NCBI GenBank assembly: GCA_965202585.1
Contig: OZ241832.1
Location: forward strand, 29,946,001-30,010,000
Length of the DNA: 64,000 bases
Direction of reading: 5' to 3'
Origin: Thalia democratica
Lineage: Eukaryota
Made by a program: the position numbers and the translations under genes. Positions 26,401 through 29,098 of the stretch are shown here, piece by piece. Under the pieces are notes generated by a model. The model made no database searches. It had not been told where the DNA came from and worked only from the letters and a program-made list of their open reading frames with translations. The first letter of the stretch is position 1. Each line of letters starts with the position of its first letter.

Positions 26401-26984
26401 TTAATGTCTGACTAACTAGAGAATGCTAATTGACATTATTTCGTTAACAAAACCAACATAAACAATTTATAAGGCGATTTGTTCAAACAAACTTTTCTAG
26501 AACAAAAAACTGTAGTTTATTCATAAACTATTTGATTACTTAGACTAGTTAAGGAGGTTCTCGAATTACTAAATTCAGTACAGTAAAGTAAAAACTATAG
26601 ATAAACTTTAAAAAACATTAAATATATTAAAATAGTATTTGTTTTACTTTTCACACTTAGTGGTGCTGTACATAGTAAAATAACTTAATAAATTTCTTTT
26701 AATTTCAAAGTTTATTTTTTATTTTTTACACAAAAGAATGCTTGATATTATTGTACTTTCATAAATTTGTTCTTTCTTTATTTTTTTAATTTGATTAAAT
26801 TCTTTAATATTATTCGGTTTCTTCAACCTGTTTTTTAATCTTTAGCGTAGAATATAGCACTAATCAAGTAGTTAACTAGTCTGAACGTATTTTCTTCTAC
26901 ATTTGTTTGATCTTAGACTAAATACTAAAATTATCTTAGACTATATTACAAAAATTTATGCAAATAATTTCAGAAGCAAACATT

Positions 26985-26990
26985 TTTATT
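26985..26990 (-). terminator. Candidate polyadenylation signal of the CAF1-like gene
   Basis: AATAAA on the minus strand about 260 bp downstream of the stop codon at 27247. The motif is common by chance here. Confidence 0.3.
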
Positions 26991-27246
26991 GACATAATAC
27001 AAAAAATTATATGTAAGACGGAACTTATAAGTCAAACAATAACACAAAACACGGAAATAAACTGAAGTAAGAAGTAGCTGAATGTATAAAATTTATAAAT
27101 GTTATGCATATTAAATAAGTTTTAAATACAGCTCATTTACACATCAGTTATTTTCAGAGTATTCTGTAATGACTTATAGAAGATAATGATACTTCTAACT
27201 TAGTATTACGGGTTTCCGATAGCATTGAACTCTTTAGCTCTCTTGT

Positions 27247-27621
27247 TCATTGACCAAGCGGGGGAAACTCTTTTCTATCGTCAATGTTAGGGAGTTTTTG
27301 TTGCAATTTGACGTTGTTAGCAGGAAGGCTTTTCTTGCTTATCTTGTTGAAATTCTTCTTTCTCTTCTTTTTCTTCTTTTTCTTGTTTTTCCGTTGTTGC
27401 AACTTGACGCGCTTAGCTGGATCATTTTCTTTAATTCGCTTAAGGTCACTCCCCATATTCCACAGGATGTTCGTGAACAGTCCCAGGTTGATGTGCTGCA
27501 GCTGTGTGAGAATATGGATGTACAACCCAACTGTCATGTACGCGTCATCAAAAGCCGGGCAGTTTGTGTTTATGACGTGAACATGGCATTTTCTGCATAT
27601 ATACTCTAATTTGTTTCTCGC
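27247..27621 (-). CDS. CNOT7-like: CAF1-like terminal exon with poly-Lys tail
   Basis: Acceptor TTTTCACAG, encodes ARNKLEYICRKCHVHVINTNCPAFDDAYMT...RKNKKKKKKKRKK...LPNIDDRKEFPPLGQ-TGA. Confidence 0.9.
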   Translation of the reverse strand, partial: ARNKLEYICRKCHVHVINTNCPAFDDAYMTVGLYIHILTQLQHINLGLFTNILWNMGSDLKRIKENDPAKRVKLQQRKNKKKKKKKRKKNFNKISKKSLPANNVKLQQKLPNIDDRKEFPPLGQ

Positions 27622-29098
27622 CTGTGAAAAGATTGAATACTTTTTAGGATATAGTTTTTTTGTCTTAAATAGATTTAACTACGATATAAGTAATATGAAT
27701 TATTAAGTATTCACATGTTTAAAAATATAAACAAAACAAGAACTAACAATCTCTAAAAAATCGTCGCAGGAAGTTACTAAATGCTTCAAATCTATGTAAT
27801 TTGGAAAGTAACTAGCTACCATATAGTTGAACTGTTTTACATTCTGTATTTTGTAATAATCATCTGTTGCTAACTTCAGAACGTAAGCCAAATCTCGGGA
27901 TCTAAAAGTTTAAATGTTTTTTCATGTATTAGTTAAGTTAAAAACAACTAATGTAAAAATTAAGGTTAAAAATTTTAACTTATTTTGTTCGTCATTCAAT
28001 ATCAAAGCATTTATTTACTAAGCTTTATTATTAAGACTGTTTTTTATACAAGGTTTCTTATAACATTCTTAGATATGTTCTAGGTTTTTTTTTTTTTACT
28101 TTTTCTTAATATATATATATACCCTTGAAACGTGACCCAAAACAAGTTTGGATTTTTCATCAATCTTGTTTTCCGAAGAAAGTTTTTAAATTCTGGAATT
28201 GTGATACCGTACGTCTCGTTCAGTGACAAATCTATGCCTCTACCTTTCATATATTCAATTGATTCTTCTGTTGATAGATCACCCCTGTATTATAAGTGTT
28301 ATAGAGTTATTATACTAGAGCTTTTTAAATCGCATATGTAATGTAAAGTTTTTATGATGGAATGCGTTCTAAATTACTTACGCTATTAATAAAATCATTA
28401 TTGAAGCATTATTTCAAATTATATAAATTTTATTAAAAAAATATATATAACTTAATTATCTACAAGTATTTACTGATAGTTTACCTAAACCTAAACCATA
28501 ATACCTTAAAATATTGTGACTCATATTTATGTTTTAAAAAAAAGGCAACATAAAATGTTTTAAAGATTAAAAAAAAAACTAACTCTCTTGGAAATTTCAT
28601 AACAAAGTTCTCCCTGTAACGTAGTCTGTAATTTGCATCCCAGAATGACATCCCGATAGTAACGGGATTAGTAACATCACAATTCCTCTTCATTATTTCA
28701 AACGCTGCCTGACTTCTATTTGGTATCTTATAATCTTTATCAGTCCCCATGGGATCTCCTGGGTATTCTGTGTCCTAAAAATAACACATACTAAGGTGTT
28801 TTGTTTATTAGCAAATTGTTTAAAGTCGTTGTGAAATATTCTTCGATACAAACAATACAACACAAGAAAGTAAAAAAAAACCCCAACTTTTTCTTTCTTA
28901 GGTGTAAACTGAAGCAAAACAAATCATTTTGCTTTTTGTTCACAGTCCTTTTTTTAGTAAGTAAAACGATGTTTAATAAATACAAGTTAGACTAACCAAG
29001 CCTACATAACGACAATAGGGTAAAATATTTTTTAATTTTTTTTCAGAATTAGTTAGGTTCACAAGAGTAGCTTTCGGTTGGTCAACTTCAGTTTCCAT
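27247..29098 (-). CDS. CNOT7-like: Divergent CAF1/POP2 (CNOT7/8)-family DEDD 3'-5' exoribonuclease with basic C-terminal tail, about 327 aa
   Basis: Exons 29098-28997, 28774-28584, 28284-28123, 27901-27748 and 27621-27247 join in frame (984 nt including stop) with GT-AG ends. CAF1-collinear motifs: RYVGL|DTEYPG (YVAMDTEFPG), IMKRNCD (LLRCNVD), DLSTEESIEYMKGRGI (DMYAQDSIELLTTSGI), WVTFQGSRDLAYVLK (WLSFHSGYDFGYLIK), YFPNYIDLKHLVTSC (FFPVIYDVKYLMKSC), PAFDDAYMT (QAGSDSLLT) and LWNMGS (LYGLGS). Confidence 0.9.
27748..27901 (-). CDS. CNOT7-like: CAF1-like exon 4
   Basis: Acceptor CTTTTAG, encodes SRDLAYVLKLATDDYYKIQNVKQFNYMVASYFPNYIDLKHLVTSCDDFLEI, donor GTTAGT. Confidence 0.9.
28123..28284 (-). 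CDS. CNOT7-like: CAF1-like exon 3
   Basis: Acceptor ATACAG, encodes GDLSTEESIEYMKGRGIDLSLNETYGITIPEFKNFLRKTRLMKNPNLFWVTFQ(G), donor GTATAT. Confidence 0.9.
28584..28774 (-). CDS. CNOT7-like: CAF1-like exon 2 (catalytic DTE motif)
   Basis: Acceptor TTTTTAG then DTEYPGDPMGTDKDY...MKFPR(E), donor GTTAGT. Overlaps ORF 28481..28750. Confidence 0.9.
28997..29098 (-). CDS. CNOT7-like: CAF1-like exon 1 (METEVDQPKATLVNLTNSEKKLKNILPYCRYVGL)
   Basis: Ends in YVGL followed by donor GTTAGT, directly before the DTE exon. The upstream acceptor at 29120-29119 means the exon may start at 29118. Confidence 0.75.

Follow-up and report, generated by a model that had tools for sequence, protein, structure and literature searches.

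We modelled from sequence a gene of five exons on the minus strand (29098..27247) of the window, by which we mean the whole 64-kb stretch of DNA analysed. Its frame of 984 nt has 327 codons and encodes a protein of 327 aa. Every intron is of the GT-AG type, the donor reading GTTAGT in three of the four, and the exons of this CAF1-like gene are richer in GC (32-41%) than its introns (19-27%) and the window (26%). Exon 1 (28997..29098) encodes M1 to L34; its start codon and N-terminal helix region align with the CAF1 N-terminus, and its donor is GTTAGT. Exon 2 (28584..28774) opens with DTEYPG, which corresponds to the ExoI D-x-E. Exon 3 (28123..28284) encodes the central CAF1 segment, and exon 4 (27748..27901) holds the putative ExoII Asp in the context SRD. 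The last exon (27247..27621, 375 nt) encodes the end of the CAF1 domain, a basic linker and a C-terminal motif, and it closes with the stop codon TGA, read from the sequence at 27247..27249. The 3' end of this exon, at 27247-27300 of the minus strand, reads QKLPNIDDRKEFPPLGQ followed by TGA, and the protein ends in ...LPNIDDRKEFPPLGQ before the stop. A pattern scan placed the first AATAAA 3' of the stop, a possible poly(A) signal, at 26985..26990 on the minus strand, about 257 nt downstream. A 23-bp unit is present twice at 26910-26956, in the presumed 3' UTR or the region downstream of the gene. A tblastn search with the spliced protein detected no second CAF1 copy in the 64-kb window, and an Rfam search of the window gave no match. 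The window is poor in ORFs; the longest one lies at 1093-2049 on the plus strand, runs uninterrupted for 318 aa with several long hydrophobic stretches and may encode a single-exon multi-pass membrane protein or receptor.

For family assignment, we compared single exons with all PDB sequences by phmmer, an approach in which each match is weak alone. The top match of exon 3 was residues 110-158 of yeast Pop2 (E 1.4e-3), followed by S. pombe Caf1 (E 0.26). Exon 4 matched CNOT8 best (E 0.085), with CNOT7 next (CNOT7 residues 151-194), and exon 2 matched Pop2 (E about 0.9, residues 62-87). CAF1-family proteins were the best or near-best PDB matches for exons 2, 3 and 4, and the matched segments followed one another in colinear order. 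The CAF1 part of exon 5 had no match in the PDB, and a Pfam scan of each exon separately returned no family at E up to 1. Taken together, the per-exon matches are convincing: judged by its sequence, the gene product is a divergent CAF1/POP2-family protein. An earlier note on this DNA had described a CAF1-type deadenylase, and the colinear matches of exons 2 to 4 to Pop2, Caf1 and CNOT7/8 in the PDB bear out the CAF1-type part of that description.

The catalytic residues were assigned at three levels of directness. The ExoI metal ligands, D35 (28772-28774) and E37 (28766-28768), both within DTEYPG, were read directly from the sequence. D155 (27892-27894) pairs with the ExoII Asp in the GYDF of CNOT7/8 in the HMMER alignment. 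As exon 5 lacks a PDB match, the ExoIII segment was aligned to CNOT7 by eye. In this alignment, the H-x4-D of CNOT7 faces C224-P-A-F-D-D229; the would-be ExoIII Asp is present (D229, 27544-27546, minus strand), and Cys224 (27559..27561, minus strand) stands at the position of the DEDDh general-base His. Since the acidic ligands appear to be kept while a Cys replaces the general-base His, nuclease activity of the Cys224 protein is plausible but not assured. For the same reason, we retain the term CAF1-like and treat the label "deadenylase" as uncertain.

We compared the predicted protein with CNOT7, CNOT8 and yeast Pop2, the deadenylase subunits of CCR4-NOT. They share colinear sequence similarity across exons 2 to 4, the DxE, the ExoII Asp, the ExoIII Asp aligned by eye and a domain of about 260 aa. 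The window protein differs in being very divergent, in having Cys for the general-base His and in carrying a basic tail of 65 aa that ends in FPxL. To our knowledge, human CNOT7 has no FPxL tail. The best explanation of the gene product is a lineage-restricted, strongly diverged DEDD protein that would have kept the acidic metal-binding residues.

The folded domain would cover approximately residues 1-262, and the tail comprises residues 263-327, with 20 Lys among its 65 aa and a net charge of +20. The last 15 residues of the tail are slightly acidic, in contrast to the basic remainder. The Lys/Arg-rich stretch, R280-K300 (27331..27393, minus strand), holds a 9-bp (3-codon) tandem repeat that encodes the poly-Lys; TRF placed it at 27353-27391 with 4.3 copies. 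We predicted the structure of the exon 5 piece with AF2. The overall pLDDT was 52.8, which is uninformative for the domain. In this model, the Lys-rich stretch forms a helix (pLDDT 76-80), and the last 29 residues or so form a coil with pLDDT mostly below 50. The predicted coil fits a short linear motif displayed in an accessible tail. It is equally conceivable that the poly-Lys serves as a nuclear or nucleolar localisation signal, in which case the protein would be kept off cytoplasmic ribosomes.

The tail ends in a candidate SERBP1-C-type RACK1-interacting motif (27250..27291, minus strand), P314-N-I316-D-D-R-K-E-F322-P-P-L325-G-Q327. Human SERBP1 ends in ...APDVDDPEAFPALA before its stop. 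In a proteomics paper (PMC9971285), the C-terminal peptide of SERBP1 is given as SSASAPDVDDPEAFPALA, with the stop codon directly after it; this agrees with the residue numbers used in PMC12823453 and confirms the SERBP1 sequence quoted in the earlier note. In cryo-EM maps, SERBP1-C (residues 393-408) is seen on RACK1, which it contacts through F404, L407, P396 and V398 (Huso, Niu et al., Nature 2025, PMC12823453). Binding of the SERBP1 C-terminus to RACK1, on which the original proposal relied, is thereby established for both the FPxL motif and the P396/V398 contacts.

When the two ends were aligned, A-P-D-V-D-D-P-E-A-F-P-A-L-A of SERBP1 faced L-P-N-I-D-D-R-K-E-F-P-P-L-G of the window protein (followed by Q), with 6 identical residues. 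All four RACK1 contact positions have a counterpart, namely P314 (P396), I316 (V398), F322 (F404) and L325 (L407). F322-P-P-L325 forms the F-P-x-L/F tetrad, and P314 and I316 lie at -8 and -6 from the Phe, as P396 and V398 do in SERBP1. Both proteins have the spacing P-x-[IV]-D-D-x3-F-P-x-L, and in both it is C-terminal, as had been claimed. The motif Leu is followed by two residues in the window protein, compared to one in SERBP1. Like SERBP1-C, the tail therefore places at the extreme C-terminus an acidic run, F-P-x-L and a small residue, preceded by a Pro at -8 and a beta-branched hydrophobic residue at -6. The hosts are unlike each other: SERBP1 is a disordered, RG-rich hibernation factor, whereas the window protein would be a folded DEDD nuclease-like enzyme, and homology between them is undetectable beyond the motif. 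The 22-aa tail gave no match in the PDB at E up to 10, and a two-sequence tail profile matched unrelated proteins alone (ArsC-like, VipB); SERBP1 was retrieved by neither search. The resemblance is thus one of a short motif and not of detectable homology, and it could reflect convergence or chance.

A chance origin would mean that a drifting, low-complexity tail, fed by a microsatellite and without docking function, had been picked post hoc from a very large scan. We therefore estimated how often such motifs arise at random. A bare FPxL carries low information: the probability of one anywhere in a 400-aa protein is about 7%, a figure consistent with the counts in a recent preprint (10.64898/2026.08.26.747346), and at the C-terminus it is about 5e-4 per protein. 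The extended pattern is much rarer at the C-terminus, at about 1e-8 per protein in its strict form and about 3e-7 in a looser one. The end-anchored BLOSUM62 score of the window tail against SERBP1 is 36, a value attained by one in two million random C-termini. The probability of a score of at least 36 is between 5e-7 (simulation) and 4e-6 (tail extrapolation) per protein. The 14-residue match is well beyond chance within one proteome. However, approximately 1 to 4 chance matches with scores of at least 36 would be expected if about 1 million proteins were scanned, an estimate derived from about 250,000 windows. With one or a few chance matches expected across a protein set of that size, the SERBP1 match alone is not decisive. 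A chance origin also draws on the tandem repeat behind the Lys stretch, whose length varies between close relatives, and on the HMMER searches with the tail, which placed unrelated PDB proteins above SERBP1. Against it stands the local composition, since the motif codons have 50% GC in surroundings of 26%.

A homologue provided a separate view of the tail. We searched 1.84e9 representatives with exon 5 using phmmer, a search blind to the tail match. The sole true homologue was P0002 (86 aa, E 1.9e-4, 40% identity); the other matches, P0001 and P0003, were spurious repeat-protein artefacts. P0002 sits on L001, a Tara Oceans metagenome scaffold of 573 bp with 27% GC. Its exon starts at the same phase-0 intron position as exon 5, 20 residues before the conserved Cys. 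Over the alignment, the homologue is 37% identical to exon 5 of the window and keeps C-P-A-x-D-D-A-x-M-T-V and L-W-N-M-x-S-D. The Cys224 codon has its counterpart at L001 238-240, within the C-P-A-x-D-D-A common to both sequences. This identity indicates that the His-to-Cys substitution is old and has been retained, and is no recent defect.

Beyond the domain, the homologue lacks the poly-Lys, and its linker is unalignable, with a 17-residue indel; K-L-Q-x-K ... E-F-P-x-L is then again common to both. Its C-terminus is EEFPVLA-stop, with the tetrad FPVL and, as in SERBP1, a single residue after the motif Leu. Scored against the end of SERBP1, its last 7 residues reach 25, with a probability of about 1.2e-5 for a random C-terminus. 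The codons differ between the two sequences for the conserved Pro (CCC/CCT) and Leu (CTT/CTA), an indication that the constraint lies on the protein and not on the DNA. The P-x-[IV]-D-D half is lost in the homologue, where F-T-F-T-E with a 1-residue gap puts Phe at -8 and -6, followed by acidic residues. What remains common to the two proteins is a hydrophobic residue at -6 followed by an acidic run and then by F-P-x-L with a small residue, at the C-terminus. The earlier note had suggested looking in orthologues for an FPxL that is kept while the linker drifts. This holds in one homologue for EFPxL-A and fails for the upstream half, and the "identical spacing" to SERBP1 may thus be partly luck. 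As the two sequences are the only ones available and are homologous to each other, the conservation of the tail amounts to one observation. It nevertheless weighs against a chance resemblance: a homologue found without reference to the tail keeps the terminal EFPxL-A across approximately 63% divergence, with synonymous codon differences.

Further searches did not enlarge this set. Word-indexed searches gave no new relatives, whether queried with exon 5 or the alignment, no related loci were found in JGI metagenome contigs or IMG/VR viral contigs, and the ESM Atlas returned scores of 0.83 or less, which are noise. Public protein sets hardly cover the lineage, and the window's own protein seems absent from them.

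At close range, we compared the locus with sequencing runs and with contigs of a related organism, referred to here as organism B. Three runs (X1-X3) contain the locus including its introns, and hence are DNA; no RNA run containing the locus was found among the sequencing runs searched. Relative to the organism B contigs, exon 5 shows five synonymous changes (G250, I255, L256, A304 and I316) and one non-synonymous change (H239Y). In the linker and motif, all changes are synonymous, I316I being the only variant in the motif, which again argues against a tail that drifts without function. Over all listed coding changes against the close relative, 6 are synonymous and 2 non-synonymous, showing purifying selection on the CAF1-like gene. 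Over 27145-27540, an organism B contig has 9 bases fewer. This corresponds to one unit of the coding repeat, an in-frame length polymorphism. Read depth over the tail is similar to that of the flanks, so the tail is not a fragment of a repeat or transposable element. X1-X3 also hold a diverged second version of 27538-27823 (the region of exon 4, intron and exon 5), which differs at 32-33 positions and by 6-7 gaps over 290 bases and is present at about half the depth. A further contig of 2.7 kb in these runs has about 87% identity to 27434-27582. Both are probably paralogues or very divergent haplotypes of the CAF1-like gene. The joints in the run contigs do not match the introns; they originate from the diverged second copy.

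These data also bear on whether the motif is made at all. If the terminal exon were mis-modelled, or the gene unexpressed as a young pseudogene, the C-terminus discussed here would never be translated; that no RNA run with the locus was found, and that the same DNA runs hold diverged extra copies, would fit such a case. However, the frame of 327 codons runs unbroken through all five exons, whose splice sites are canonical, the coding changes against the close relative are biased towards synonymous ones, the length change of the repeat stays in frame, and the intron position and exon content are common to the Tara homologue. We regard a mis-modelled exon or pseudogene as very improbable. Chance resemblance, for which the size of the scan and the repeat-fed linker speak most directly, deserves more weight, and we consider it unlikely after setting these points against the conserved terminus.

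Deadenylation factors often carry PAM2 motifs; those of PAN3 and Tob, for example, direct them to poly(A) tails. The tail could in principle be a PAM2-like ligand of the MLLE domain in poly(A)-binding protein and recruit the nuclease to poly(A) in the same way. The E-F-x-P of the window protein does correspond to the C-terminal half of the consensus LNxxAxEFxP (PMC7356810). The consensus includes Leu3, Ala7 and Phe10, and neither the window tail nor the homologue conforms to it. Leu3 and Asn4 are absent, with N and I in the window protein and F and T in the homologue. Ala7 is obligatorily small in PAM2, a bulkier side chain being sterically unfavourable (PMC7356810), and this position is Arg in the window protein and Glu in the homologue. 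Moreover, Pro12 is Val in the homologue, and the element common to both sequences is FPxL, not EFxP. A PAM2-type function accordingly has very little to recommend it, and we give it scarcely any weight. An EVH1 ligand was also considered. Such ligands have the form FPx-hydrophobic-P and need the final Pro; since neither the window protein nor the homologue has it, this reading was rejected.

A more general alternative accepts EFPxL-[GA] as a real, selected short linear motif and assigns it a partner other than RACK1, such as another WD40 or hydrophobic-groove protein, a scaffold that substitutes for CCR4-NOT, or an import/export factor that works with the basic stretch. A short FPxL could fit other grooves, and the linker, strongly basic with a net charge of +20, looks like a nuclear localisation signal. 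Furthermore, the homologue keeps the core of the motif and not strictly the upstream contacts specific to SERBP1 (P at -8 and V/I at -6). On the other hand, among the pairs considered here (RACK1-interacting motifs, PAM2/MLLE and EVH1 ligands), the arrangement acidic-x-FPxL-small-COOH is documented for RACK1 alone, in SERBP1, and the Tara C-terminus matches the last 7 residues of SERBP1 far better than a random C-terminus would. We hold a partner other than RACK1 to be rather improbable, about on a par with chance resemblance.

The RACK1 site in question is used by several other proteins. The ZAK motif FPPLIK and the FPxL of LARP4 bind the same RACK1 site as SERBP1-C (PMC12823453), and a second group likewise described a single RACK1 cleft for short linear motifs shared between proteins (PMC13293227). 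A recent preprint showed that an FPxF motif is required for RNF10 activity, counted putative FPxL-type motifs in 4.5-6% of ribosome-associated proteins and predicted RACK1-interacting motifs in CNOT1, CNOT2 and CNOT4 (bioRxiv 10.64898/2026.08.26.747346). As proposed here for the window protein, ZAK, LARP4 and RNF10 are enzymes or RNA-binding effectors that reach the 40S head by means of a short linear motif, and the FPPL core of the window protein is that of ZAK. In contrast to the C-terminal motif described above, those of ZAK, LARP4 and RNF10 are internal, and ZAK and LARP4 combine theirs with a second RACK1-interacting helix. This second motif (S-aromatic-A-x-hydrophobic) is absent from the window protein. 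The predictions for CNOT1, CNOT2 and CNOT4 share with our proposal the idea that mRNA-decay machinery reaches the ribosome via the RACK1 FPxL site. They concern bare tetrads in scaffold or E3 subunits, whereas the window protein presents an extended SERBP1-like match on a nuclease-type subunit. We found no description in the literature of such a motif on a CAF1-type nuclease. The earlier note had spoken of a possible undescribed route to ribosome-coupled RNA decay; the word "undescribed" still fits for CAF1-type nucleases and needs to be narrowed for the docking principle, given the FPxL motifs known in ZAK, LARP4 and RNF10 and predicted in CNOT1, CNOT2 and CNOT4.

Together, these results give about an even chance, in our judgement, that the tail is a SERBP1-type RACK1-interacting motif on a CAF1 paralogue, which would tether the protein to RACK1 on the 40S head. 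From the sequence we infer RACK1 as the partner, the association with the ribosome and any RNA-trimming activity. According to this model, F322 and L325 of the FPxL core would insert in the hydrophobic cleft of RACK1 blades 2-3, and P314 and I316 would lie over blades 3-4, like P396 and V398 of SERBP1. The nuclease domain would consequently be anchored at the 40S head, next to the exit site of the mRNA, and the Lys-rich stretch may add non-specific affinity for rRNA or mRNA. The protein would also compete for RACK1 with the other proteins of the cell that carry RACK1-interacting motifs, of the SERBP1, ZAK and LARP4 types.

A broader hypothesis, which we put forward tentatively and consider clearly less probable than the tethering itself, is that this is a CAF1-family nuclease that acts independently of CCR4-NOT and lives on the ribosome, docked to RACK1 by its SERBP1-type C-terminal peptide. 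It might trim or deadenylate RNA co-translationally. If the Cys variant is inactive, it might instead act as a competitor that gates the access of other proteins with RACK1-interacting motifs to RACK1.

Only in 2025-26 did work on SERBP1, ZAK, LARP4 and RNF10 reveal that ribosome-associated factors share the FPxL site of RACK1 and compete for docking there, and the link of this site to mRNA decay has so far been a prediction from the bare tetrads in CNOT1, CNOT2 and CNOT4. Should the motif prove non-functional, the case would serve as a caution on reading short motifs from very large scans. If the proposed docking is correct, the protein would provide the first natural case of a decay-type nuclease fused to a RACK1 anchor and would add a new class of client to this recently defined site. 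It would offer a compact construct, a nuclease domain with a 14-residue anchor, for ribosome-coupled RNA trimming. It would also represent a natural experiment, indicating that a decay enzyme can be connected straight to the 40S head in the course of evolution.
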